Source of the DNA: Piromyces finnis finn
Taxonomy: Eukaryota; Fungi; Neocallimastigomycota
NCBI GenBank assembly: GCA_002104945.1
Contig: MCFH01000049.1
Location: 186,001-250,000, forward strand
Direction: 5' to 3'
DNA length: 64,000 nucleotides
Position 1 is the stretch's first letter, and every line of letters starts with the position of its first letter. A program made the position numbers and the translations under genes. This document shows, piece after piece, positions 7,874 to 61,768 of the stretch. The notes under the pieces are model-generated. The model searched no databases and was not told the origin of the DNA. It saw nothing but the letters and a program-made list of their open reading frames with translations.

Positions 7874-10800
7874 GGCATCAAATATTTTAAACTTTATTAT
7901 TAATTTAATTAAAATTATAATACATGAAATATAAAAATTAAAATAAAATAAAAATAAAAAAAATATGTTTAAATAAACACAAATGAATAAAAATTGGGTA
8001 TAATGTATTCTAGTAATTTTAATTAAAGTAAGAAAGCCACTATCATACTAAAGTATAATAATTGTATTTGACTTCCAATGGGACACCGAGCCAAAGATCA
8101 AAATTTTATCATGGGACAAAATTATGATCTCCATTGGTTGCGCTGGCCCTCCTGGCCTGTCTTACTGTTTCTTCAGCATTGACGCTCTTGGATGTTGCTT
8201 CAAACCTTTTGAACATTGACCATTGCTGGCCAATAGCAAAAGGCATGATTTTGGTTAGAAGTTCCGCGGTTACCGTCAAGAATGGTGTTCCTTCATTAGT
8301 ACCAGATTGAATCTGACGCTTACAAAGTTCTTTCCATTCCCTTGAATTGTAATTGATATTGTTAAAACTTCTTCCCCCAAGAAGGAATTTAAATATTTTA
8401 CTGCACACACTAGAATAATCATACACATTAATATTCACCGGATTATTAGAACTATTACTATCATTAACTAAATTACTATCTAAATTAGAATTATTATCTT
8501 CACTATTGCTATCATTACTAATATTATTATTTCTATTACTACTATTGTTATTATTACTATTGTTACTATTACTATTGTTATTATTACTATTGTTACTATT
8601 ACTATTAATATTATTACTATCTCTACTGATATTATCAATTTCATTATTATTGATAGGACTATTGGAATTACGTTGACTGAAAAAATTTAATAGCTGGACT
8701 ATGGAATCATAATGTTTAATACGGATATCTCTAAATGTTGGACAATCTAATAACCAATGTTTAATACTTTGATCTCCACACTTGCAACATGGACAGTAGT
8801 TAGGACAAACTGGATCAACAAATTTGGCAGCTTTGGCAACTCTAGCATCCAACTTGTATCCGCTTCTTGCTTTCAATAGCCAGTAGAAGCCATAGGCAAA
8901 CTCTGGGTACTCATAACATAATTTAATAAAATCTTTAGTATCAATAAACTTATTATCATCATAATATTGCGCTTTGATTGAATTCCCTTTGAGATCTTTC
9001 CAATAAAAGTTTTTAACTGCTTTAACATCTCCATGTTTCTTTAGTTTTTTATCAAGTGTCCTACTTGATTTGCACCACGTGTATTTTCTAAATTTAGGAA
9101 TGTAATTGACAAGGTATGAGATAATACAATTTGAGTTTTTCCATTTGTTAAAACATCTAACCTGAGCTAATGCACATTTGGCTGACAATGGAGGAATATT
9201 CAAATCTTTTGAAATAGAGTATAAAGATATAAACGATACAGCTTTATGAACTCCGGCAACCCATCGTATTCCTTTGTTAACATGCTTCTGTGCAATTCTA
9301 GACCTGGCTTTGTTGGATCCAAGTAATGGTGCAAAGTATGAAACTCTGCTAATCACTTGTGAGTTAAGTACTAGCTTTTTGAAGGGAATAGGAATATTAG
9401 GATTTCTTAAGAATTTACTGACTGAAAAAAGCCCTTTCAAAACCTTGTTATTAAGAGCTTTAATAACTGGTTTAAGGGACAGATTCTTATCAAATGGAAC
9501 ACCAAGATAAGTATAACAATCAGTAGTTGGAATGGGTTGTCCTGCTAAGTAAAATGTTGGATCTCTCTTGTTCTGATTTTCTATTGATTCAGGACGAATC
9601 ACCATCGTTGAACACTTCTGGATACCAAATTCCATTTCATTATACAAGGCCCATTCATTAACTCTTCTAAGCATCTTTTTTAAGCATCCTCTTGTTGGAG
9701 CACAAATAACTATATCATCTGCAAAAAGTCCACCACAGCATCGAGTGTCACCTAAACTGACTCCGAGATCTTCACACTCTTTAAATATATCATTAATAAA
9801 GAGATTAAAGAGAATAGGAGAAAGAGGGCATCCTTGACGGACTCCTTTCTTCACATCAAAAGATTTCGAGAATTGTCCATCTAATTTGACATTAGCCTTA
9901 GATGTTAAATATAAATTTTTGATGAATTGTAAACTCTTACCTCGGATTCCTAAACAATCTAATTTATGGAGAATATTACCGATTGGGACTGAATCGTATG
10001 CTTTCCTGAGATCTAAAAAGGCCAAATATGTCTCTTTATTATCTAATTGACGTCTACGGCATATTTCTTGGATTGAAATGAAAAGACTGATACTTTCTTC
10101 CTTTTTTCGAAAACCAAATTGTTCAGGTCTAATGAAATTATTCTTTAGACCATATTCTGAGATTCTAGTGGTGACAATTTTGGAAATCAACTTAATACCA
10201 TTATTGATAAGTGATATACCTCGATAGTTATCACAATCTGTCAAATCTCCCTTCTTAGGAATAGAAACAATACTGGATTCATTCCATGAGTTGGGGAAGT
10301 CTCCATCCCAAATACGGTTGAATAATTTAAGAATAAAATTTAAACCATAAGCATCATTATCTGAAGTGGTATTACCGGAAGAATTATTATCTGTAGCATT
10401 ATTAGAATCATTACTTGATGGAACTAATGCTTTGTAAAATTCAATTGGAATACCATCCGGACCTGATGCTTTATAATTCGGAGTAGAGAGGATAGCTGAC
10501 TTGACTTCATCAATACTAATATCTTGGTTGATATCCCATTCATCAAGCATAGGGAGTGAAAAACGTTTATTCGTTGGTTCTTCATACCAATGCTCCAAAT
10601 CAAGACTTACACCACTTGGATCTGATGCAAGCTTTTCGAAATGATCATGCCACACATCTAGTTGTTCTTCTGTAGCAACAACTAATTCTCCATTTTTGTT
10701 TTTAATTGGTTGAGCAATAAAGAAAGAATCTTTTCCAATTTTTGCAGTTTTCTTGATCCATTTCCAGGCCTTCTTAGGATTATGACTCTTCATATACTTA

Positions 10801-13403
10801 CATCCTGTTTTAATCCAATGAAGATATTCTTGTTTCCTAAATTCATTACATCTTTTGTGGATGTAATCAATGAGCTTACGGTAGATTTTAATTCTTTTAA
10901 TAAATTCATCTATATCATAAATTCTTTCTTTTTTAAATCTCTTATACAACTTCATTTTGATTTTTTGGAGATTAAAAATTTGTTGTGAAATATGAAATGA
11001 AGACTTTATAACATTATTTGTTGAGGTAATACTGAGCTCGTCTGCAATTGAAAAAACAGTTGAAGTAAACTCTTTGGAAAGTTCATCTGTAGAAACATTA
11101 GGATCGTTGAATTTTGCTGAAAGTATTTGGAATTTATTATGACTGAGAATAGATTCCTTTTCCTCAATACATTTTAATCTATTCCATTTCAGAATTTTCT
11201 TAGGAACAGTAAAGTCATTAGAAAAATCTTCCATAGGAATAATTTTACCATTAATAAGAAGTGGCTTATGGTCTGATACAGGATAAAAATTATTTATAAA
11301 TGATCCTGAGTGAATAAGATCTTTCATCTTCGAATTGATAAGAGCATGGTCAATGTCGGAAGATTGATCACCTCGAGTCCAAGAGATAGTAGACCCTCTA
11401 AGCGGAAGAATTTCCCAATCTCCTAATCCATTAGTTGATAACCAGTTGGATAATTTTACTTTAGACATATTAAAATCACCAACAAGAATCGATGGATGGG
11501 ATGAATGAGTTTGTAACCACAAGCGAACTTCTAACTTTGCATGATCAACATAGATGTTGTGATGACTATGAGGCATATAAACATTTCCAATCGAGCATTT
11601 GAATCTATTCCAGAGACTAAAAGTATAAATAGAAATAATATACTTTCCAGAGAAGTTTTCAAGTGAGGCTTGACACGAATTGTGAAAACCTAAATATAAA
11701 CCTCTCATTCCCGGAACTGATTCGTCAGCTTTCTTGAAAAAGTGTCTATAGTTTCGCAAAGTAACACGACAAGGATAATCTGTATTCGAACCAGAACCAT
11801 TACCAGTTTCTTGGAAACATAAAAATAATGGTTTGAAAATAGCTGTGAAATAGCTAATACTATCTCTCTTTTCATGATTCCACCCATTGGTGTTCCAACT
11901 AAGACAAAAAGAAAAGTTATCAGGCTTGTTGGATGAGGAAGAATCGTTGCTATTATTATTATTATTAAAGTCATCGTTATTAATGGATGATGCATCAGAG
12001 GAATAAGTAGAACTATTACTAGATGGCTGTGAAACTGAAGAACTATCAACTATTGAACTGTTATCAGAGTTGATAGAACTATTAGAATTAATTGTTGAAT
12101 GTTGAGATTGAAATTGTGTTTGCTGTAGATCTGGAATATTTTCATGATGGGAAACTTGTTGAAGATCCTGTTGAAGATCTTGTTGAAGATCGGATTGTTG
12201 ATGAGATTGTTGAACTGATTGTTGAACTGATTGTTGAAATGATTGTTGAATAGAATGTTGATATTTATTAGAAACTAAAATTTTACGTTTGAGAGTGGAA
12301 AAAGTGTATTTGTGATTCCTTCTACTACGAGCTGAAAAGGAAATTGAGGTAACTGAAAGTTTCTTCTTTAACATGTGTAAGATTTTAATACAATCTTTTG
12401 ATGAACCATGAACCTTGACTAAGAAAAAGTGATCATTGAAAGTTTGAAAATATTTAACACTAATAACTGAATTAAATTTATCTTCTAGAATAACCTCGAG
12501 TTTTTCCCATAGCATATTTACTGACCATGATCGAATACCACGGATAAAGAAGGAGCGAATATCATCTAAGGGGATACCATAAGACCGGGTACCACGTCTG
12601 ATATAATTCTTGTCTTTAATATAAAGGACTGACATGATAATAAATTCTAATTAAAAATATTGAATATAAAATAAATACTAATAAAAATTATAAATATAAC
12701 GTATATGGAAAAAAAATCTGTCTCTCTCTCTCTTCTTAAAAGTACTGGATAGTACAAAAATTGTTACGATGCTTTGTTTAAAGTTTCTTTTTTTTGAATT
12801 CTAGTTGTAAATTTTCTTTAAAAATTCTAGTTTTGGTTTGTTGTTAGTAAATTCGAATCGCTTTTTGACACTAAACTTGTTTGACTTTACTTTTCATTAA
12901 ATATTTAAATTGGTAAAAAATTTGAATCAAGAATGTCGACACCAGAAAGCTTGTGAATAGTATTTTTACATGATGTAGAGTGAATCAGTCTCTTACAAGA
13001 AACAATACAACAATAGCTACATGAATATAAAAATACAATGCAAATGCTAAAGTTGACTACATTGGATTCTTACAAGAGAAGAGTAGTACTACATGAATAC
13101 ATGAATAAAAGAAAAAAATACAGCAACAAAATGTATTACTCTTCTAATTAAATACTATACAAACTTACCTGAGTATCAAACATTCAACTTATTCATCAAA
13201 TACTTAAATTCGATGAATAAAATGTTTTTTAATCGCTCAGTACCATGAGCTTAGTCCTAATAATTTTCCCTTAAAGACTAACCAAGCATCCATTGCGCAA
13301 TGCTTGGATTTAATTCTTTCTACTCTCTCAGTACCATGAGCATGAGTAGACCCCCTTGATAAACTACATTTATTAAATAAATGAAGGCACGTTCCCAAGA
13401 GGG
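7841..13403 (-). mobile_element. Apparently full-length non-LTR retrotransposon (LINE) with single ORF and poly(A) tail
   Basis: About 770-nt leader (13403-12636), intact 1508-aa ORF, about 240-nt 3' UTR ending GATGCCGTT, then A30 (plus-strand T run 7841-7870). Both flanks are the same TAATAC repeat. Confidence 0.93.
8109..12635 (-). CDS. LINE polyprotein: N-terminal extension, apurinic-like endonuclease, reverse transcriptase, C-terminal CCHC zinc motif
   Basis: APE motifs SWNTNG, CFQET, VYMP, LVGDFN, DIDHAL and SDHKPL. RT motifs SGPDGIP, IPKKGD..DCDNYRGISL, QFGFR, FLDLRKAYDSV, GVRQGCPLSPILFN, LFADD and YLGV. C-terminal CPCCKC...HWLLDC. Confidence 0.96.
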   Translation of the reverse strand: MSVLYIKDKNYIRRGTRSYGIPLDDIRSFFIRGIRSWSVNMLWEKLEVILEDKFNSVISVKYFQTFNDHFFLVKVHGSSKDCIKILHMLKKKLSVTSISFSARSRRNHKYTFSTLKRKILVSNKYQHSIQQSFQQSVQQSVQQSHQQSDLQQDLQQDLQQVSHHENIPDLQQTQFQSQHSTINSNSSINSDNSSIVDSSSVSQPSSNSSTYSSDASSINNDDFNNNNNSNDSSSSNKPDNFSFCLSWNTNGWNHEKRDSISYFTAIFKPLFLCFQETGNGSGSNTDYPCRVTLRNYRHFFKKADESVPGMRGLYLGFHNSCQASLENFSGKYIISIYTFSLWNRFKCSIGNVYMPHSHHNIYVDHAKLEVRLWLQTHSSHPSILVGDFNMSKVKLSNWLSTNGLGDWEILPLRGSTISWTRGDQSSDIDHALINSKMKDLIHSGSFINNFYPVSDHKPLLINGKIIPMEDFSNDFTVPKKILKWNRLKCIEEKESILSHNKFQILSAKFNDPNVSTDELSKEFTSTVFSIADELSITSTNNVIKSSFHISQQIFNLQKIKMKLYKRFKKERIYDIDEFIKRIKIYRKLIDYIHKRCNEFRKQEYLHWIKTGCKYMKSHNPKKAWKWIKKTAKIGKDSFFIAQPIKNKNGELVVATEEQLDVWHDHFEKLASDPSGVSLDLEHWYEEPTNKRFSLPMLDEWDINQDISIDEVKSAILSTPNYKASGPDGIPIEFYKALVPSSNDSNNATDNNSSGNTTSDNDAYGLNFILKLFNRIWDGDFPNSWNESSIVSIPKKGDLTDCDNYRGISLINNGIKLISKIVTTRISEYGLKNNFIRPEQFGFRKKEESISLFISIQEICRRRQLDNKETYLAFLDLRKAYDSVPIGNILHKLDCLGIRGKSLQFIKNLYLTSKANVKLDGQFSKSFDVKKGVRQGCPLSPILFNLFINDIFKECEDLGVSLGDTRCCGGLFADDIVICAPTRGCLKKMLRRVNEWALYNEMEFGIQKCSTMVIRPESIENQNKRDPTFYLAGQPIPTTDCYTYLGVPFDKNLSLKPVIKALNNKVLKGLFSVSKFLRNPNIPIPFKKLVLNSQVISRVSYFAPLLGSNKARSRIAQKHVNKGIRWVAGVHKAVSFISLYSISKDLNIPPLSAKCALAQVRCFNKWKNSNCIISYLVNYIPKFRKYTWCKSSRTLDKKLKKHGDVKAVKNFYWKDLKGNSIKAQYYDDNKFIDTKDFIKLCYEYPEFAYGFYWLLKARSGYKLDARVAKAAKFVDPVCPNYCPCCKCGDQSIKHWLLDCPTFRDIRIKHYDSIVQLLNFFSQRNSNSPINNNEIDNISRDSNNINSNSNNSNNNNSNSNNSNNNNSSNRNNNISNDSNSEDNNSNLDSNLVNDSNSSNNPVNINVYDYSSVCSKIFKFLLGGRSFNNINYNSREWKELCKRQIQSGTNEGTPFLTVTAELLTKIMPFAIGQQWSMFKRFEATSKSVNAEETVRQARRASATNGDHNFVP

Positions 13404-13961: not shown

Positions 13962-16247
13962 TTAACAATTGGTTGGCATACCACACCAGTCACCGTTTTC
14001 AACACCCCATTCACCATCAGCATCGGTGTAATAGACTGTACCACAGGACTTACAGCATGGATAACCTTGGTTAGTAATAGCAACTGGACACTTTGGCTTT
14101 GGAGCTGGAGCAGTACCACATCCACACCATTGGTTGTTTTCAACACCCCAGTTACCATCAGCATCAGTGTAAACAGTTTGGCATCCAACCTTACAACACT
14201 TGTAACCTTGGTTAGTAATAGAAGCAGAGCAAACAGTAGTTTCATTGCTAGAATTGTTGTTGTCGTTGTTAGAGGAACCATCCTTTTGTAAACCATAAAT
14301 GGAAATAAGACCGTTAGCAACAGCAATTTCAGTTTGAGCCCAGAATCTGTGGTAGTTGAATTCTGGTGGGTTACCACCGTTAAGGTATTCTTCAACTTGA
14401 GCCCAATCTGGATCTTGCTTGTACTTTGGACGGATATCAATGAAGGTAACACCACTCTTAATGTTGGCACCTTGAGCATTCTTACCAGTCCAACCGGATG
14501 GAATGTAAACTTCACCACCGAACTTGTCGTAATCACCACGAGCTTCGTGGGAAGAGTAACCAAGATCATCCTTGTAGTTTTCAATGGCATCCATAACTTC
14601 AATAGAAAGGTTAATACCTTCTTGGTCACCATCTCTCATAGAAACCCACATTAAACCCTTAATGATAGAAGCAATGGAACCAAGATCAACACCTTCGGAA
14701 GAAACAGTTCCGTGAAGGGAACGGTTAAGGTTAGACTTGTTGAAGTTGGAAGAATTCCATTCATCTGGGTTACCAGACCAGTCAAGGTTAGTAGCGTGAA
14801 CAATTTCACCACCACTGACACGAGTAGTGTCCTTAACCCACTTGGCCCATTCTTGACAAACCTTTCCGGCTCTTTCATCACCAGAAACGTAGTATAAGGA
14901 ACAGACACGTTCCATACCCCAACCTTGCATACCAGTCCAGTTGTTGGATGGTGGGTCGTGGTAAACTGGTTGCCAGTCGTACCACATACCGTAGAAGGTA
15001 GTGATATCACTGGATGGTTGTTCGTAAGCACCTTGCCATGAGTTAGTGGCACCACCAGCAATACAACCTTCTGGAGTTTGTAACCATCTGAATAATTCTA
15101 ATTGACGGTCAAGAGAAGTAGCCCAATCCTTAGCACCAGTGGAAGACTTTGGCTTGAAGGCAGCTTGAGTAGAAAGAATCCAGGCAGCTAATGGGTTTTG
15201 GTAACCACTGTGAGTGTGAGAAGAACCAATTCTCCAGGCCCAGTCACCTTGTAAACCACCACCCCAGGCGAAGTACCAGGAGATAAGGTAGTGAGCAGAG
15301 TTCTTACCACGACCAGCGGAACATCTTTCAGCACCAACACAGTTACCAATCTTCTTGAAGTATTTATCGTATTGAGCGTAACGTAAGTAATCACCAAGCT
15401 TGGCAGCCTTAGAGGCAACAGAAGAAAGGTCAACACCATCTTCTTCAGCCCAGATGTAGGCGAAGTAAGCAGCTTGAATAGCACGAGCATCAGCATCTGG
15501 AGCAGCAGTGTATCTCCATTGCTTAGCGTAGGAGTTATCAACAGTGAAAAGATCTAAGAAACCGTTACGACCACCCCACTTCATGGCTTCCCAACATGGG
15601 TGTGGAACAGTCTTCCAAGTAGATTCGGAAGCACCACGTTGGAAGGTGTTAATGAAAGATGGCTTAGTCTTACCATCACCTTGTTGACCGTAACCGTACC
15701 AGTTATCACCATCAATAATCCAGTGCATAATGTAAATATCCCAGTTACCGTAGGCTTGTTGAAGTTCCTTAGCAATTGGATCTTCACCAACAAGACCATC
15801 TTGGAAGATAAGTTTAGATGGATAATCATCAATATTATCGTGTTCAGCAGCATAAGTAGCTGGAGAAGATGGGTTGTATCTACTGTTACCTGGTTGGTTC
15901 TTTGAATCTGGAATAATATGCTTTTCTAAGTAATTCCAGGCTTCTTCAACACCGTCGTAGTTACCAGTAATCTTACCGTTAACAGCTTCTAACCAAATCC
16001 AGAAAGAGAAGGTTTCAGAGACAGATTCGTGACCGTGATCTGGAGCTTCAACCATAAGAGTTTCAACAGAGTGGTATGGAACCTTTTCAGCAGAGAAGTA
16101 TTCAGAACTGTAAGAACCATTACCAGTCATAACATCATAAAGATCAGTAACACGTCTACCGTATTCATCGTTGGCACGCTTTTGCATTGGAGCAGCAATA
16201 GCGGCAGTAGCACCAAGAAGAGCAAGAGCAGATCTAATAGATGGCAT
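13962..16247 (-). CDS. cel48A: Cellulosomal GH48 cellulase: signal peptide, GH48 catalytic domain, two fungal non-catalytic dockerin (CBM10-like) domains
   Basis: 761-aa intronless ORF. GH48 motifs VPYHSVETL..EAPDHGHESVSE, INTFQRG..ES.W, QWRYT.APDADAR, HYLISWY.AWGG, YHDPPSNNW.GMQ.W and YHRFWAQ. Two C-terminal QGY.CC...YTDADG.WGVEN..WCG dockerins. Strong codon bias; A-run before the ATG. Confidence 0.97.
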   Translation of the reverse strand: MPSIRSALALLGATAAIAAPMQKRANDEYGRRVTDLYDVMTGNGSYSSEYFSAEKVPYHSVETLMVEAPDHGHESVSETFSFWIWLEAVNGKITGNYDGVEEAWNYLEKHIIPDSKNQPGNSRYNPSSPATYAAEHDNIDDYPSKLIFQDGLVGEDPIAKELQQAYGNWDIYIMHWIIDGDNWYGYGQQGDGKTKPSFINTFQRGASESTWKTVPHPCWEAMKWGGRNGFLDLFTVDNSYAKQWRYTAAPDADARAIQAAYFAYIWAEEDGVDLSSVASKAAKLGDYLRYAQYDKYFKKIGNCVGAERCSAGRGKNSAHYLISWYFAWGGGLQGDWAWRIGSSHTHSGYQNPLAAWILSTQAAFKPKSSTGAKDWATSLDRQLELFRWLQTPEGCIAGGATNSWQGAYEQPSSDITTFYGMWYDWQPVYHDPPSNNWTGMQGWGMERVCSLYYVSGDERAGKVCQEWAKWVKDTTRVSGGEIVHATNLDWSGNPDEWNSSNFNKSNLNRSLHGTVSSEGVDLGSIASIIKGLMWVSMRDGDQEGINLSIEVMDAIENYKDDLGYSSHEARGDYDKFGGEVYIPSGWTGKNAQGANIKSGVTFIDIRPKYKQDPDWAQVEEYLNGGNPPEFNYHRFWAQTEIAVANGLISIYGLQKDGSSNNDNNNSSNETTVCSASITNQGYKCCKVGCQTVYTDADGNWGVENNQWCGCGTAPAPKPKCPVAITNQGYPCCKSCGTVYYTDADGEWGVENGDWCGMPTNC

Positions 16248-20066: not shown

Positions 20067-22329
20067 TCATTGTGAAGTACTACTTGTGAAAGTACCATTA
20101 TTTAGAGTATTACTATTTTTACTATTTATTGATAGTCTATTTGATTCATTTTCTTTCCTTTTCTTATGTATTTTTTTTAAATTTCTGAATGCTGTTAGTA
20201 TTAATACAAATAATATAATGGCGATTACTATGATGACTATGTATAATATGCTAAATTTCTTCATTGACGGATTACCCATAACATTTCTTTTGAATAAAAA
20301 TATAAATTAATTTTTTATATGATTAATGAATACATTATATACATTATATATAAAAATAATTACATTGTTATATTTAATTTCTTGACTTCTTTTGGTATAG
20401 AACCACTTAATTTATTATTATTTAATAATCTTTTTTTTTTTTTTTTGAAGAAATAGGATAATTAGTAAAAAAGAAAATAAAATTACTTTATTATAATCAA
20501 TAATAGAATGATAAAAGCTAATTACAATGATTTTAAATTTGATAATTTTCCAAGTTCAGGCGGTATAGAGCCAGTTAATTCGTTTCTAGATAAATTTCTA
20601 TTTATGTAAAATGATTAAATAACAATAAAGATGATTCCAATAATAATATTTATTAAAATTAGATTTTTATATATAAAATATATAAGATTTTTATTTACAA
20701 TGTTTCTAATTTAGATAGATTTCCTAGTTCAGGTGGTATAAATTCACTAAATTTATTATCTGACATGTTTCTATTTCATTAATTCATATAGGAAAAAGAA
20801 TTCTTTAATAACCAATATCATTTCAGAGTTTATTATAATATTTAATACAATAGTTTTAAAGTTAAAAATTACAATGTTATTAGTTTCGTAAAATTCCCAA
20901 ATCCAGGTGGTATAGAGCCAGTTAATTCATTTCTTGATAAATCTCTATTTATAAAAAATATTTAATAATATTAAAATGATAATAATCAATAATCAATAAT
21001 CAATAATCAATAATCAATAATCAATAATCAATAATCAATAATCAATAATCAATAATCAATAATCAATAATTAATAATGAAATATTTAAGTAATAATTACA
21101 ATTCTTCCAAATTTAAAAGTTTTCCAAATTCAAAAGGTATTACATCACTTAATTTATTTTGATTTAACATTCTTTCAAATAGAAATAATAAATTAATAAT
21201 AAATATTATACATATATATTATAAACTGATATTTTAATTAATTACAAATGTTTTAATTTTGTTAAATTTCCTAACGAAGAAGGAATTGAACCTGTTATTT
21301 GACAATTAAATAATTCTCTTTTTTTTTTTTTTTTTTTTTTATAATTAAAATAAAAACTTATTAATAAAACAATACATTGACTATTCTTTAAATTAATATA
21401 TGATATTTAATAAAAATTATACAATTCTTCTAATTTAGACAAATTTCCAAGTTCAGGTGGTATTGGATCAGAAATAATACCATTTTGTATTTTTCTATTT
21501 CGTAATAACAAAAAAGAATGGGTTTAAATATGTATAATAAAATTTATTATTAATAAAAATAAAAAATATTTTATTAATTACAACTGTACTAAATTTGATA
21601 ATTTCCCAAGTTCAGGCGGTATAGATCCTTTTATATTATTTCCATTTAAATATCTTTTTTTTTTTTTTTATCAAAATAAATAAATGATAATAAAAACAAT
21701 AATAAAAACAAAAAATAATTAATACAATAATATTTAAAATAATAAAATGGTATATAATAGTTACAAGTATTCTAAATTTGTTAAATTTCCGAGTTCCGGT
21801 AGTATATAACTATTTAAATGGCATAATTAAAACTTTTATTAATATATACGATAATAGTAATAATGATAATAATAATTCATTACAAATATTTTGAGCTAAT
21901 TATATTTCCCAGTTCATTAGAGTCAGAAAGTATTAATTTATCTGTAGTTAATTGACTTTTTTTTTTTTTTTTAAAAAAATTGTAATATATTTAATTTAAT
22001 AATGTGGTAAATGAAATATCTTATAATTTATTTCAATTATGTTTCTTAACTACACAATTCTAGAATATAACTTGACAATTTTATATGATATCTACTCTAG
22101 ACTAATAAAATCTCTGAAATTGAATTAAGAACTAGTTTATATTTTTATTTAAAATCTTTTATTATTACATTTTAGAGACATGACCATTTGTACATGTAAT
22201 TCCTTTTTCTGAACAACAATCATCTGATTGCTTTTTACCTAATAATTTATTTATTACATCACAATCATTTTGGGCACAAGTAAATCTTAGTATGGTAATG
22301 ATATTAATTAATAAAATTAATATATTCAT
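20067..22329 (-). CDS. LRR receptor-like protein 1 (signal, Cys N-cap, 9 LRR exons, cap exon, TM, Ser/Asn-rich tail)
   Basis: Exon 1 22329-22169 reads MNILILLINIITILRFTCAQNDCDVINKLLGKKQSDDCCSEKGITCTNGHVSK. Then a divergent 72-nt exon (21955-21884), a 45-nt half repeat and seven 72-nt exons (e.g. YLNGNNIKGSIPPELGKLSNLVQ), a 66-nt cap exon, and a last exon overlapping ORF 20067..20279 (TM ILYIVIIVIAIILFVLILTAF). All introns are phase 2 GT-AG. Confidence 0.85.
20981..21070. repeat. (AATAATC)n heptamer repeat in an intron of LRR gene 1
   Basis: About 12 tandem copies. Confidence 0.9.
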
Positions 22330-52577: not shown

Positions 52578-54563
52578 TCAATGACTATTAATTATAATAT
52601 TACTAATTACTGGAGTATTACTATTATTATTTGTAGCATATTGTTCTGAAGAAATTGCATTACTTGTACTATTTTCACTATTAATATTTCTATTATTTCT
52701 ATTATCTCTATTATTCAAATATAAATAGAGTTTTGCAAAAATAACTAAAAATATACATATTATAATTGGAGTAATAACAATAAATATATTGCTCGATTTA
52801 TCATTTAATAATGGATTATTATATGTGTATCTATTTGTTATATACAAGTTTATATTATTAAAATTTTAATATACTATATTATTAATATTATAAATATAAT
52901 TACAATTTTATATTTTTTTTCTTAATTTCTTTTGGTATAGTACCACTTAAATTATTATTAATTAATCGTCTAATTTAAATATAGATACATAAATTACAAT
53001 TATTATTATAAAAAATATAACCTATAAATATATAATATAACGTATATGAAATTATGAAATTATTACATGGTTTTAAGTTTTGATAAATTTCCAAGTTCAG
53101 ATGGTATAGGGCCGGTCAAGTAATTATTAGATAAATCTCTATTTTTATACGAAAAGAAATATTTAGTCATGTCATATGTATTAATATAATGTATAAAAAG
53201 ATAATGTTTATGTTTGATATATTATAACTTAGTACAGTTCTTCCAAGTTTAATAAATTTCCAAATTCATGAGGAATGGTACCATTTAATACATTTTGATA
53301 TAAAAATCTTTAAAAAGTTGAAAATAAAAAAAAATTAATAAACTACCAATAACTATATATTATTATTGATTATTTTTAGAAATAATTTGTTAACTATTTT
53401 ACAATTGCTTTAATTTTGATAAATTTCCAAGGGATGAAGGAATTGAACCTGTTAAATGATTTTCAGATAGGTTTCTTTTTTTTTTTTTTTTTTTTTTTTG
53501 AAATAAAATATATATTAATAAAGTAAATAAATACATTTTTCATAATACAAGTCTTTTAATATTTACAATTTTTCTAAATTAGATAAATTTCCAAGTTCAG
53601 GAGGTATAGAACCAGTTATATAATTTCTACTTATTTTTCTATTTCAAATAAAAGTTAAAATATTAATAAATTTAAGTTTAATAAAATAAATGGAATATAC
53701 ATAGGATAATCACAAATTTTCCAAGTTGACTAAATTCCCAAGTTCAGGTGGTATTGCACCTTCAAGTATATTTTGTTCAAAATTTCTTTCAAATGAAAAT
53801 ATTTTAATTATTATTAAATTGTGTATTATAATTTTTCATTTTTTTTTTAAAAAAAAAAGTTATCAACATTAAATTACAAATTCTTTAAATTCGACAAGTT
53901 TCCTAATGAAGAAGGAATTGAACCTGTTAAATAGCATCCATGGACTTTTCTTTTTTTAAAATTATGTAATAAAATTTAATCATTAATGAAGAAAACAAAT
54001 ATATATATTTCATAAATAATATTTAAACAATTACAATTCTTCCAAATTAGATAAATTTCCAAGTTCAGGTGGTATTGAATCATATATATATTTTCCTTGT
54101 ATATATCTATTTAATAATATTAAAAGAGAAATATAATAAATATATAAACTTTTAAAATACTACTTTTATTTAAAAAAAATAGTACAAATATTTTAAATTC
54201 GATAAATTGCCAAATTTAAATTTAACTATTTTTTATATATAAAAGAACCCACTTCAAAATATATAAAAATATCTTTTTTTTTTCTATAAAAATTTAACAT
54301 GGTATTGATTCGCATAAAATAAAATATTCGTCATGTTTATAACGTAATTATTTAAAAAGTTAAATTCATTACATTTTAATGATATGACCATTTGAACATT
54401 CAATTTCAGTATCTGAACAACAATTATATGAAGGATCTTTTTTCAATAATTTATTTATAACATCACATTCTTTATTATCTCTTTTTTGCTGTTGCTGTTG
54501 TTTTTGGGTATAAACACATTTTACTATAATAATAAAACTAACGAGTAAAATTAATATATTCAT
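52578..54563 (-). CDS. LRR receptor-like protein 11 (7 intact LRR exons, cap, TM, Asn/Ser-rich tail)
   Basis: Exon 1 is ORF 54369..54563. A damaged second exon lies near 54185-54250. Seven 72-nt exons between about 54.1 and 53.07 kb, a cap exon and a last exon overlapping ORF 52578..52847. Confidence 0.83.
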
Positions 54564-55870: not shown

Positions 55871-56157
55871 GGCAATATAGATCATTTTTTATTAACAAAC
55901 ACTTTAATATATAAAATATTTAAATTTATCAAATTATACTTTATATAAATATTTTATAAAAAAATTAATTATGAACTATTTATTTAAAAAAAGGAAATTT
56001 TTCATTATTATAAAGTATTTAATTGTAAGGTTTATTAATAGATCTTTTAAAAGTACATATATTAACATAAAAAAATGGATAAAATAATATTAAATAAAAA
56101 AAAAAGATTACGTCTATATTATAATCATAGACGTAGTCCTTATTATCATCATTATTA

Positions 56158-59100
56158 TTAATTCCAACAAATACCATATTTTCTTTGACATTTTTTATTG
56201 TGACTGCAGTAACTACTAGTAGTTCCACAGAATCCTTCTTTACTGCAACATTGACCTTCAGGACATGATCCCCATGATCTACCACATCTCAATTCACATT
56301 TATTTTTTTGGACACTACCAGAACATGTTCTTTCAAGTACGAATACATTTTATTTTTAGAATATATTATGTTTATATTAATATATTTTTATATTGAAATT
56401 AAAATATATTCAGTTATAAAAAATTAGAATATTATAAAATTTAGTACTATTCTCCAGAAAATGAATAAATTTTTTTATATTGACTTACATTTCATTTCCA
56501 TTTTGTAAACTCTTATCTTTTATATTTTCACAGTCAATGCAATTATAAGATACATCACTAATTATATGTTATTATTTTTTTATACATATTTTTATAGTTT
56601 AGTCATGATATTTACTATTAATATTAATTTATAGTATTATAATTTATTCTACTAATTTATATTTACAATGTAGTAAAATTAGTTAGATTTTCAACATCAG
56701 GAATAGGTCCACTTAAATTATTATTTGATAAATCTCTATATATTATTATAATTTATTTAATGTAAAAAAATATATAGATAGATTATTATTAAGATATATT
56801 ATAAATCCTTGTTAAAATTATGATAGCATAAAAATTTTTCTCTTACAAAATGATAAGTTCAGACATTTTTTCGATAGTTGAAGGAATTTTACCAGTTAAT
56901 TGATTGTTATTTAAATATCTATTTAATTTAATTATTCATCAATAAAATAGTTAATAAATAATAATTCTATTTTTATTTTAACTCTATAAATTATGAATAT
57001 ATTTAATATTTACAAATATTTTAAATTAGTCAAATTTCCAATTTCCGAAGGAATTTCACCAGTCAATTGATTATCTTCCAAAAATCTATTTAATTCATTT
57101 ATTAATTAATATTTAAAAGTCAAAATTATTTTTAATTTTAATTATAAAACTTTTTTAAATATTTTTAATATTTACATATCTTGTAATAAAGATAATTTTC
57201 CAATAGTTGAAGGAATTTTACCAGACAATTGATTCTCCATGAAATATCTATTTAGTTTAATGAATAAAACTTAGTTATTTTAATTTCTTATTTCAATTAT
57301 TGATATTTTTAATAATTTCAATATTTACGAATGTTGTAATGAAGATAAATTTCCAATGGTTGAAGGGATGGAACCTTTCAATTGATTATTATTTAACCAT
57401 CTAATATAATTTATTTAATATTTTATGAATAAAATAATACTCTTTATTTTTATCAAATAAATAATAAATATTTTTTAATATTTACATGTCTCGTAATGAA
57501 GATAATTTTCCAATTTCTGAAGGGATTTTTCCAGTTAATTTATTCCAAGCTAAAATTCTATTTTAATTTAATTATTTTTTCATCAATAATTTAACAAGTA
57601 AAACTTTTTTTTATTTTTACTTTAAATATAAAGAATTTTAATATTTACAAACGTTGCATATTAGTTAATTTTCCAATAGTTGAAGGAATTTCACCGGTCA
57701 ATTGATTATCGCATAAAATTCTATTCAATTCATTCATTAGTATTAAAAATCTTTTTTTTTAATTTCATAAATAAATATTTATAATATTATTAATATTTAC
57801 AAAACTTTTAAATTAGATAAATTTCCAATAACAGAAGGAATAGTTCCTTTTAATTTATTAGAATTTAACCATCTATATAATATAGTTATTCATTAATATT
57901 AATATGTAAAAAAGTATTTTTTTTATTTTTATTATTTTAATTATAAATATTCTTACAATTCTTGTAAATTTTTTAACTTTCCAATAGCCGAAGGAATTTC
58001 ACCAGTTAATTGATTAAAATTTAAATATCTATTTAATTATTCATTAATATAATGGTTAATAAGTAATGATTCTATTTTTTATTTTACCTCTATAAATTAT
58101 AAATATATTTAATATTTACAAATATTTTAAATTAGTTAATTTTCTAATAGTTGAAGGAATTTCACCAGTTAATTGATTATCATCTAAATATCTATTTAAT
58201 TCATTCATTAATTCATAATTTAGTAAATTAAAAATTTATTTTAATAATTATAAAAGTTATAAACACTCTTAATATTTACAAATATTGTAAGGCAGATAAA
58301 TTTCCAATTTCTGAAGGAATGGTTCCAGTCAGTCTATTTTTATCTAAATGTCTATTTATTAACAAAATATTTAATGAGTAAAAAAATTTTTAATTAATTA
58401 TATAAATATTTTTAAAATTTCAAATATTTACAACCAAACTAGTTTTTTCAAATTTCCAATAGTTGAAGGAATGGATCCTTCCAATTGATTAGAATTTAGC
58501 CATCTAATATATTAATTAATATTTAATGAATAAAAATTATTTTTTATTTTGATTATATATAAATTATAAATGTTTTTAATATTTACATTTCATATAATTC
58601 ATGAAGGTTTCCAATTTCTGAAGGAATTTTTCCAGTTAACTTATTCCAAGCTAAAGCTCTATTTTAAGTTATTTTTATTTTTATCATAATATAATAAGTA
58701 ATTTATTTTTTTATTTTTACTCTTTTTATAAATATTTTTAGTATTTTCAATATTTACGAATGCTGTAAATTGGTTAAATTTCCAATAGTTGAAGGAATAG
58801 ATCCAGTTAATTGATTACTATCTAAATATCTATTTTATTTATTTTGTTTAATAAGTAAAAAGTTATTTTTATTTCAATTATAAAAGTTTTAAATGCTTTT
58901 TAACATTATTAATATTTACAACCAAATTAATTTAGTTAATTTCCCAATTTCTGAAGGAATGGATCCAGTTAATTTATTACTATTTAAATATCTATTTAAT
59001 TTTATTTATTCATTAATATAATTAGAAAAAAAATTATTTCTATTTTTATTATAAATATTTTTAATATTTTTCAATATTTACAATTCTTGTAAATTTTCTA

Positions 59101-59633
59101 AATTTCCAATAGTTGAAGGAATGGTTCCTGTTAATTGATTACCACTTAAAAGTCTATTTTTATTTTGTAATAATAAATATTTGATAAGTAAAAATTATTA
59201 ATTAAAAAATTATAAATACTTTTATAATTATTAATATTTACAAAATTCTTAAATTGGTTAAATTTCCAATAGTTGAAGGAATTTCACCAGTTAATTGGTT
59301 ATCACTTAAGACCCTATTTAAATTTTATTTATTCATTAATGTTTATTGAGTAAAAATAAATTTTATTTTATTTTATTTTATATTATATTATATTATTAAA
59401 AAATATTTTTACATTTCGGTGATTCGACCATTCTCACATGTAATGTATTGATAATTATCACCTCTAATATTGCAACAATTAGCAACAGAATATTTTTGTT
59501 TCCATAAACTTTCAATAGCTTTACAATCGTTTGGTGCTGTTTCTTCATCACGTTTTGATAATTTGTCAATGGAATAAGAAAGTGAAGTGCTAGACACTGT
59601 CAAAACCAAACCTAAGAACCTAGACAGTCTCAT
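56158..59633 (-). CDS. Secreted LRR protein with C-terminal hevein-like chitin-binding domain (CBM18); 16 LRR exons, no TM
   Basis: Exon 1 is ORF 59409..59633. Sixteen 72-nt exons (consensus xLxxNQLTGxIPSxIGNLTNL), a 69-nt cap exon and a 69-nt exon (DVSYNCIDCENIKDKSLQNGNE) follow. Last exon 56329-56158 reads TCSGSVQKNKCELRCGRSWGSCPEGQCCSKEGFCGTTSSYCSHNKKCQRKYGICWN*, matching the hevein pattern CG...C...CCS..G[FWY]CG....YC. Confidence 0.88.
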
Positions 59634-61768
59634 TTTAAATGATAACTTACTTTTCGTGAAATTTTTTAATAAACTTTTTTTAAAATTTTAGAATTTATAA
59701 AAAAAAGAAAAATTAATAACAAAATGAAAATAGTTCTTTTCATATTTTTTGAATAAAAACTAAATATTATAAAATACTTGTCTTTTCTTTTTTTAAATTT
59801 TTATTATAGCAGAAATATTTTAAATCATTTTCTCTTTTTTATTATAGATCTTTTTTTTTTTTAAATTTCAATTTAATGTTTTCCATCTTTATAGGTTTAT
59901 TTTATTTTATTCTTTTTTTCTTATATTTTTTACATTTATTAAATAAATCCATTGAATTATAGTAATAATATAACATTAAAAGAAAAGAAAATATTCATAC
60001 CTTTTAACAACTCTTTGATTTTTTTTTTTTTTATTTTTTTTTTGTTTTTTTAGACAAAGAAGAGAAAAAGATTCTTTGAAGAAGAAATGAAGATTTAAAT
60101 TTGGAAAAACTCATTTAGGGATGATCCGTAAATTAATATAAATTAATTTATTGACATTATATATTAATTTATATTAATAAAATTTAATAAAATTTAATTA
60201 AATTAATTTATATTAAAAAAAAGATAATAAATCGATAAATTTAAAAAAAAAAAAAGTCTTAATTATTCATTTAATAATAGAATAAAATAGGTTTAATATT
60301 TTTTATTTCTTTATTATTAATCAATAGTGAATAGATATTTAAATACCATGATTATTATTGTTTAAATAGTATAGTTATTATTCATTAGTACTATCTTTAT
60401 CTTCTTTTTTTTATCTTTAGTTTTTAACCAATCAATTTCCGTCATCAAAATTAATTAATTAAAAATAAATTCTTTAATTTAAAAAAGAAATTCTTCAAAG
60501 AAGAGAAATTCTTGAAAAAGTACAATTCATTTTTAATGATAGCTGAGTTTTAAATAATATGAATAATAAAGAAATTATATTCATAATTATTCAAACGGTT
60601 AAGAATCATAAATAATAAATATTATTTCATTATTAAGAATACAGTATATTATTCTATATTCACTTTTTTTTATTTATGATATTTTATTTTTATTTGAAAT
60701 TTTGAACAATTCATTTCGTTAATAATATTAATTTTTATAAAATCAATAAAGATATTTTAAATGGATCTATACTACTCTAAATCTTGAAATTGAATAATTT
60801 TTGCAAATTGCTCATATTTATTGTAATTAAACTTTTTTTTAGTGTGGATTAAAAATATTTATTGTAATATACTAACTTTCATTTTTCATTAATCTTTCAT
60901 TTTCATTAGTATAAAAATTGAAATATAAACTATTTTTATACAACAATTAAATAATTGGAAATTCATTACCTGGTGGTGAATAGGCTTATAGAAACACTGT
61001 TACAAAGTAAATATTTTAATTGTCATTTAATTACTTGAATAATTTAAACATAGTAATATTTTACAGAAAATACAATCATTTGTATCACTTTTTTGGAAAA
61101 AATTGATAATTCTTTTAATAAAAAATTGAATTAATTCTATGTTATTTAAAAAGAAATTTCTTTTCAACTTAAAAAAAAAAGAAACCTTTTAAAATTGTTT
61201 TAAAATTTTAACAAATATTTAAAGGAAAAAATAATAAAATTACTAAACAACAGTTAATTATAAATATATATATATATATATTTATTTATTGTATTAATTT
61301 GAATTTTCAAGAAAATTTTATAAGATGGACTAATAATAAAATATGATTATTTTATTATTAAAAAACTTTATATTATAAAATTTATATTATATTTATTCAT
61401 AATCAAGTATCATAATGTTTTGTATTTTTTTTTCAGTTTTTTGAATATTTAACAAAAGTAAAATTTAATATATTCACCATTATTTTCATAATTCATTATA
61501 TTTTATTTAAAGTAATTTGAATTATATATATATATATAAAAGTATTATTTACTATTTACTAATATATTACTATATTATTAATTATTGAATTGGTAATCTG
61601 CATTACTTTCAAAATGGTGCTTTTTTTATGTTTATAGAATAATTCAAAAATAACAAATAATAGGAATACAGTATTTAAAATAACTATAATAATTCTTTTA
61701 TATTTAACTTCTTTATTTTTATTATTAAAAAGAATTAATAATAAAAAAATTATTAAATTGTAAAATAC

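Follow-up and report, generated by a model that had tools for sequence, protein, structure and literature searches.

How does a fungus hold a plant-type leucine-rich repeat (LRR) ectodomain at its surface when the gene that encodes it ends in a chitin-binding domain and not in a membrane helix? Plants rely on extracellular LRR proteins of this type as their main modules of surface recognition; in fungi such proteins are, to our knowledge, essentially unstudied. The question is raised by a 20-exon gene on the minus strand (59633..56158) of a 64,000-nucleotide stretch of the Piromyces finnis genome (GenBank assembly GCA_002104945.1, contig MCFH01000049.1, positions 186,001 to 250,000), hereafter called the window. 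A first-pass annotation, made from the letters alone, had described this gene as an LRR protein in which the membrane anchor is replaced by a family 18 carbohydrate-binding module (CBM18), that is, a hevein-type chitin-binding domain. Our data demonstrate that the LRR-CBM18 fusion is transcribed as one mRNA. The gene is real and expressed, and we put at about 60% the probability that it encodes a secreted protein of an LRR-CBM18 family, whose CBM18 domain tethers it to the chitin of the fungus's own wall with the LRR domain facing outward.

The exons were assembled from the minus-strand reading by their GTAA..AG borders. The resulting coding sequence of 1683 nt specifies 560 amino acids without an internal stop, and all 19 introns (80-159 nt) run GTAA..AG and lie in phase 2. 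Exon 1 (59633-59413, 221 nt) carries the start codon, a signal peptide, a KR pro-region and a four-Cys N-cap, and ends in phase 2. It is followed by sixteen exons of 72 nt (exons 2-17, 59313 to 56847, with introns of 80-99 nt), each encoding one 24-residue plant-type LRR, and by the 69-nt exon 18 (56735-56667) with the seventeenth and last repeat (DLSNNNLSGPIP...). Exon 19 (56557-56489, 69 nt), which is unique in the window, encodes a C-terminal Cys cap, YNCIDC, followed by the first part of a linker, KDKSLQNGNE. Exon 20 (56329-56158, 172 nt) encodes a two-Cys linker and one CBM18/hevein domain and closes with the stop codon TAA (56160-56158); the domain proper extends from R14 to C54 of the exon-20 peptide (56167..56289) and contains all eight Cys of the family. 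A chance origin is excluded because seventeen in-register 24-residue repeats with canonical splice borders form one open reading frame (ORF) in sequence of 17% GC. The exon-per-repeat design and the preserved phase-2 junction that the first-pass annotation had proposed are therefore borne out; its count of 16 LRRs equals the number of 72-nt exons and leaves out the seventeenth repeat on its 69-nt exon.

Transcripts of the gene are found in four public runs (X1-X4) from one organism and three studies, in which 11-23% of the words sampled from the stretch recur. A low word share is expected for a spliced transcript, since few 31-mers fit in 72-nt exons. Contigs of these runs skip the predicted introns at CT..AC joints. 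The most informative one, record 6 of X2 (854 nt, depth 72), lies in mRNA sense, starts at 58028 and covers LRR exons 10-19 together with the CBM18 exon. Positions 57176-57247 occupy record positions 417-488 and positions 56329-56246 occupy 771-854, with zero mismatches, and the 282 nt between these mapped pieces equal 72+72+69+69, exactly the four predicted intervening exons. The contig thus splices the LRR exons to the CBM18 exon at 56329, precisely where the junction had been proposed, which places both on one mRNA and rules out separate transcription of the CBM18 exon, one of two findings that the first-pass annotation had named as refuting its reading. Retention of intron 19, after which the frame would stop within one further codon, is ruled out as the main form as well, because the depth of this intron in X2 is near zero (1.9), whereas the bins on either side of it reach 50 and 108. 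At the other end, RNA from exon 1 is present at 59412-59559 in X4 and at 59568-59678 in X2, and the 5' untranslated region (UTR) extends at least to 59678 (45 nt).

Several other features of the transcripts and of the gene were observed. In three runs, contigs (depth ~24-31) connect 58927 with 56317, but the ends do not look spliced and the shorter side measures only 38 nt; another contig deviates at 56238-56241. Such contigs most likely reflect cross-matching transcripts of paralogues with fewer repeats and not an isoform. The LRR exons (56847-59313) show a weak periodicity of seven repeats: identity between exons at this spacing is 75%, against ~68% at other offsets, and between introns 76%, against ~72%, with pairs 6/13 and 9/16 reaching 85-87%. 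This pattern suggests that a block of seven repeats was duplicated long ago among exons 2-17. At the junctions 58758/58658 and 57329/57247 (repeats 5 and 14) the split codon reads TC|A (Ser), so that these repeats begin LQHS; in the other repeats the split junction codon gives a hydrophobic core residue, mostly Leu. Finally, a hairpin at 56110-56134, 24 nt past the stop codon, consists of an 8-bp perfect stem, ACGTCTAT, a 9-nt loop and ATAGACGT; the rest of the 3' UTR is AT only. The hairpin has no counterpart after the stop codon of P0001, the P. finnis paralogue described below.

The predicted protein consists, in order, of a signal peptide, a KR site at residues 27-28, a four-Cys N-cap (C37, C53, C54 and C66), 17 LRRs, the YNCIDC cap, the two-Cys linker and the hevein domain. 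The KR site, eight residues ahead of the first N-cap Cys, had been noticed in the first pass and proved to be conserved in the four relatives described below. The 17 repeats keep a strict 24-residue register and fit LxxLxLxxNxLtGxIPxxIGxLxx. The plant-specific LRR class is defined by a 24-residue repeat with the consensus LxxLxLxxNxLxGxIPxxLxxLxx. Single LRR exons gave weak LRR_1 matches in Pfam. In a comparison with the whole spliced model, LRR proteins scored 300-395 bits; plant GSO1-like kinases were among them, a GSO1-like potato protein with 334 bits. The Pfam domain LRRNT_2 (PF08263) was not detected in exon 1 at E <= 1; by eye only, the exon 1 motif CC-x(n)-C-xxG-x-[IV] resembles it. 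The product also carries nine N-glycosylation sequons. Among the residues predicted to line the concave face of the repeats, 18 of 64 (28%) are Phe, Trp or Tyr, compared with 19 of 212 (9%) in the membrane-anchored neighbours (Fisher p = 2.5e-4). To judge from sequence, this aromatic-rich face is consistent with a dedicated binding groove, and it identifies no ligand.

No transmembrane (TM) segment was found in the 560-residue product, whose C-terminus is polar and whose Kyte-Doolittle mean over 19 residues peaks at 1.26. Nor does an alternative TM exon lie downstream or in the introns, as none of 12 tblastn matches to the TM exon of a neighbour falls between 54563 and 59700, and what appears hydrophobic in the spacer at 54.6-56.1 kb is noise from AT-rich sequence. 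The claim that the protein lacks a TM segment therefore stands, as does the broader picture of a secreted plant-type 24-residue LRR protein with a CBM18 end.

The identity of the C-terminal domain is supported at three levels, Pfam, PDB sequence matches and predicted fold, and with it the Cys linker and terminal hevein domain of the first-pass annotation. Residues 14-49 of the peptide from exon 20 match the Pfam family PF00187 (Chitin_bind_1) with 29.2 bits, above its gathering score of 27.8, and a sequence search of the PDB returned pokeweed lectins, hevein and wheat germ agglutinin (WGA). Aligned with 46 CBM18 modules of gut fungi, the peptide retains the invariant columns (eight Cys and three Gly) and the near-invariant G16, G20, S29 and Q48. 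An AlphaFold2 (AF2) model of the peptide reached a predicted local distance difference test score (pLDDT) of ~90 across residues 11-56. Its best Foldseek match was hevein (1wkx), with a target-normalised TM-score of 0.79 and a root-mean-square deviation of 1.8 A, the E-values being weak because the domain is small; the best 30 PDB matches were all hevein-type. With hevein, WGA and fungal CBM18 lectin-like proteins the module shares the eight-Cys hevein fold, the CCS..G.CG core and the Tyr at the hevein-30 position, and it differs from hevein in having Glu in place of Trp21 and Phe in place of Trp23. The known partner domains of CBM18 are chitinases, deacetylases and tandem lectins, whereas here the partner is an LRR domain.

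This combination is not unique to the window. When exon 1 was compared by phmmer with 1.84 billion representatives, the sole match was P0001, listed at NCBI as 'L domain-like protein [Piromyces finnis]' and encoded on another P. finnis scaffold, MCFH01000066.1 (fragment L001). P0001 contains two short LRR modules (about 4+2 repeats), each with an N-cap, and two CBM18 domains; in the public gene model each of its LRRs occupies an exon of its own. From signal peptide through KR site to N-cap, the two proteins are 58% identical (62% for the N-cap by itself); they also have the final LRRs, the cap, the linker and the first CBM18 in common, with 46% identity over the aligned ends. Exon 18 corresponds by homology to the final repeat of P0001, exon 19 is near-identical to its cap exon (DLSNNCINCESIKDKSLQNGNE), and the terminal-exon boundary is identical, in that the cap exon closes with ...QNGNE and the last exon opens with TC.... 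DNA similarity of 66-71% reaches beyond the exons, into the 5' flank and into the introns at either end. An N-cap tree supports the pairing of the gene with P0001 (0.99); at 33-39 residues it is too short to separate TM-type from CBM-type lineages. A CBM18-only gene of 122 amino acids lies at L001:20924-22041, 8 kb from the P0001 gene.

Further relatives come from environmental contigs, which carry no taxon name. P0138, from an intron-less, cDNA-like 1065-nt contig of the Joint Genome Institute (JGI), has the same design with seven LRRs and one CBM18. A scan with the last exon found two intron-less, cDNA-like JGI metagenome contigs, L002 and L003, that encode a signal peptide, KR, an N-cap and 9-11 LRRs, followed by an NC[IL]xC cap, a two-Cys linker and, by motif count, eight and six CBM18 cores. 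P0001, P0138, L002 and L003 constitute a KR-site subtype, in which KR stands 6-10 residues ahead of the first N-cap Cys. Its members also have in common the IPx[ST]IGNL LRR signature, the N-cap framework C-x(14-17)-CC-x(5-12)-C and a four-Cys cap/linker module (NC[IL]xC cap and a linker Cys pair 8-10 residues apart) that precedes CBM18. Our gene differs from these four in its 17 repeats, against about 4+2, 7 and 9-11, and in its CBM18 count of one, against 2, 1, 8 and 6. Four more proteins, P0127, P0133, P0140 and P0142, returned like P0138 by a region-restricted word search, combine PF00187 with LRRs of a different subtype. On the evidence of the shared pro-site, N-cap, LRR signature, cap/linker and exon junction, the gene is a member, by sequence, of a gut-fungal LRR-CBM18 family. 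Among solved structures, the best matches of P0138 are plant ectodomains of the GSO1, MIK2, FLS2 and HAESA type; LRX2 and LRX8 also match, with lower scores. A look-up of P0138 in the ESM Atlas gave, as a lead only, eukaryotic LRR proteins fused to CBM1 as the nearest clusters (63-98 members), which hints that an LRR joined to a wall-polysaccharide-binding module may be a recurring design.

The position of the gene raises the further question of whether its last exon was exchanged. Positions 20000-64000 of the window contain plant-type LRR genes in tandem, all on the minus strand; the LRR-CBM18 gene is the sole non-TM member of this array. The terminal exon of the neighbours encodes a juxtamembrane NNPLL motif, a TM helix and a short tail, and tblastn with such an exon located 12 of them on the minus strand of the window, near 20237, 23264, 26865, 30668, 33493, 38223, 41067, 43172, 45915, 49010, 52829 and 62425. 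These neighbours share with our gene the strand, the one-LRR-per-72-nt phase-2 exon design and the Cys framework of the N-cap. They lack the Cys cap exon, however, their LRR signature is IPPELGNL and not IPx[ST]IGNL, and their N-caps are only 30-48% identical to that of the LRR-CBM18 gene. The sole TM neighbour with KR between signal peptide and N-cap (…QQQKRDNKEC…) is the immediately downstream gene (54373-54563, minus strand), which in this respect resembles the CBM18-type genes. Because the LRR signature and N-cap are divergent, the cap exon is extra and a closer paralogue exists elsewhere, we reject a recent swap of the last exon from a TM neighbour. The earlier wording that the anchor had been replaced is fair at the level of the superfamily and does not hold as a simple last-exon swap within the array. 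As far as sequence comparison can tell, the gene is an established LRR-CBM18 lineage situated inside a TM-type array.

How, then, might the protein work? The signal peptide would direct secretion, and a Kex2-type protease would remove a short pro-peptide at the KR site. The N-cap and the C-terminal cap would be disulfide-bonded. The CBM18 domain, in which three of the four hevein contact positions are kept as Ser, Phe and Tyr, would bind chitin non-covalently, and if this chitin is that of the fungus's own wall, the LRR solenoid would be displayed there, with its Tyr/Trp-rich concave face pointing outward as a ligand-binding surface. The neighbouring paralogues would present a related ectodomain at the membrane via their TM helix. 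Several points weigh against this tethering model. The hevein contacts Ser19, Trp21, Trp23 and Tyr30 correspond to Ser, Glu, Phe and Tyr here, and one module means weak avidity compared with relatives that have two to eight, so that the affinity for chitin may be low. The AF2 model of P0138 is confident for the LRR solenoid and drops to a pLDDT of 40-65 in the linker and CBM18, and the domain calls were made on pieces of the gene and on relatives, not on the full-length spliced protein. On the side of expression, the four middle exons of X2 record 6 rest on the 282-nt arithmetic, and the RNA label of the runs ('RNA?') is a guess, for which the removed introns do argue.

The same weak and reversible binding expected of a single CBM18 would suit a soluble bridging lectin or adhesin, whose hevein domain binds N-acetylglucosamine (GlcNAc) polymers of other organisms while the LRR domain binds the fungus or its plant substrate. 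Hevein-type domains such as WGA generally bind GlcNAc oligomers, and our domain matches such proteins in the PDB; partners could include other fungi, bacterial peptidoglycan and methanogen walls, and the protein would then mediate physical association. Brown et al. (2021, PMC8665504) report that, when a gut fungus grows together with methanogens, no class of genes is up-regulated more than CBM18 and the strongest induction falls on non-catalytic CBM18 genes; they propose a role in physical association. Nothing links the LRR-CBM18 gene itself to this induction, however; the closest chitin for a secreted fungal protein is its own wall, and relatives with up to eight CBM18 modules resemble high-avidity wall anchors. 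We therefore regard the bridging function as possible and rather unlikely, and prefer tethering to the fungus's own wall.

A protein on the wall could also protect it, with CBM18 coating the chitin against rumen chitinases and the LRR domain inhibiting wall-attacking hydrolases in the manner of plant polygalacturonase-inhibiting proteins (PGIPs). An adhesin and a PGIP-like inhibitor, along with a decoy and a co-receptor, had been among the candidate roles suggested in the first pass. The LRR class is that of PGIPs and plant ectodomains, and a preprint describes a CBM18 protein that protects from chitinases in Verticillium (bioRxiv 10.1101/462499). A single module would make a poor shield, though, no enzyme target is known, and the N-cap without an LRRNT_2 match at E <= 1 and the 17 repeats, against ~10, speak against PGIP orthology; such a shield or inhibitor is, in our judgement, quite improbable. 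Alternatively, the gene could be an artefact, either two genes of which one supplies the LRR exons and the other the CBM18 exon, or an untranslated, decaying copy. No public gene model for the protein emerged from the word searches or the search of representatives, and with intron 19 retained the frame would close directly behind the cap exon. Against this stand the mismatch-free contig spliced at the predicted acceptor, the frame that stays open across 20 exons, and the same junction, which is annotated in P0001 and continuous in P0138, L002 and L003. We consider an artefact scarcely credible.

Among other known systems, the plant LRX proteins (LRR-extensins; PDB 6qxp, 6tme) resemble the wall-tethered form proposed here most closely in function, being secreted plant-type LRR proteins with Cys-rich caps and a C-terminal wall-fixing module. 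Their anchor is a cross-linked extensin with Ser-Hyp repeats, whereas our gene ends in a hevein domain without a Pro-rich region. They belong to a different kingdom, and no evidence points to a RALF-like ligand here; the resemblance would thus be one of analogy and not of orthology. Plant PGIPs and the GSO1, MIK2 and FLS2 ectodomains share the 24-residue plant-specific LRR class with our gene, but they have no CBM; the repeats of PGIPs number about ten, and the receptor kinases add a TM segment and a kinase domain. For PGIPs, we found the LRR class alone in common, and no orthology.

The protein did not surface in the phmmer search with exon 1 or in the word searches, despite many shared 5-residue words, and exact look-ups of two further ORFs of the window gave no match. 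Since its own protein never surfaced in these protein searches, the gene is probably not publicly annotated in this form. No paper that we found in open-access full text describes an LRR-CBM18 fusion. The first-pass remark that the architecture was not known from fungi can therefore be kept for its characterisation in the literature found and not for its occurrence, as it recurs in the P. finnis paralogue P0001, in environmental contigs and in public sets (P0001, P0140). Surveys of carbohydrate-active enzymes tally LRR-CBM18 genes just as CBM18. CBM18 is the most abundant CBM family in at least one gut-fungal genome, and its genes there have no known function (PMC8665504).

In the remainder of the window, which has a GC content of ~16% over most of its length, two features stand out. 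An intron-less gene on the minus strand (13965-16247), in a 44% GC island, encodes a GH48 cellulase with two CBM10 fungal dockerins, and its exact product is absent from the gene index. GH48 enzymes with CBM10 dockerins are a hallmark of the anaerobic gut fungi (Neocallimastigomycota), and the gene looks like their known cellulosome GH48 of bacterial origin. A LINE-like (long interspersed nuclear element) ORF of 1508 amino acids with a reverse-transcriptase domain lies at 8112-12635 on the minus strand; copies of this retroelement, 94% identical, flank the P0001 gene on MCFH01000066.1 (L001:4007-6259 and L001:12935-14933).

Taken together, the gene itself is one more, well-supported member of its family, a secreted plant-type LRR protein with a lectin that would serve as wall anchor. 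Anaerobic gut fungi have large families of plant-type LRR proteins, and this gene shows the wall-lectin form beside a dozen membrane-anchored relatives. One could go further and suppose a single plant-type LRR ectodomain family with interchangeable anchors, namely a TM helix, CBM18 and possibly dockerin/CBM10, that makes up a surface recognition repertoire in which the CBM18 members are wall-resident sensors or adhesins. A gut-fungal protein with an LRR and two CBM10 modules has been listed (PMC12421816). We offer this wider idea tentatively and think it unlikely as it stands; if it were true, the repertoire could sense partner microbes, such as methanogens, or plant-derived ligands, and would be a fungal counterpart of plant LRX proteins and receptor-like proteins (RLP). 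Should LRR-CBM18 proteins prove to be wall-displayed binders, the expansion of CBM18 in gut fungi would gain a concrete role, and these proteins would provide a handle on how the fungi sense their partners or substrate or attach to them.

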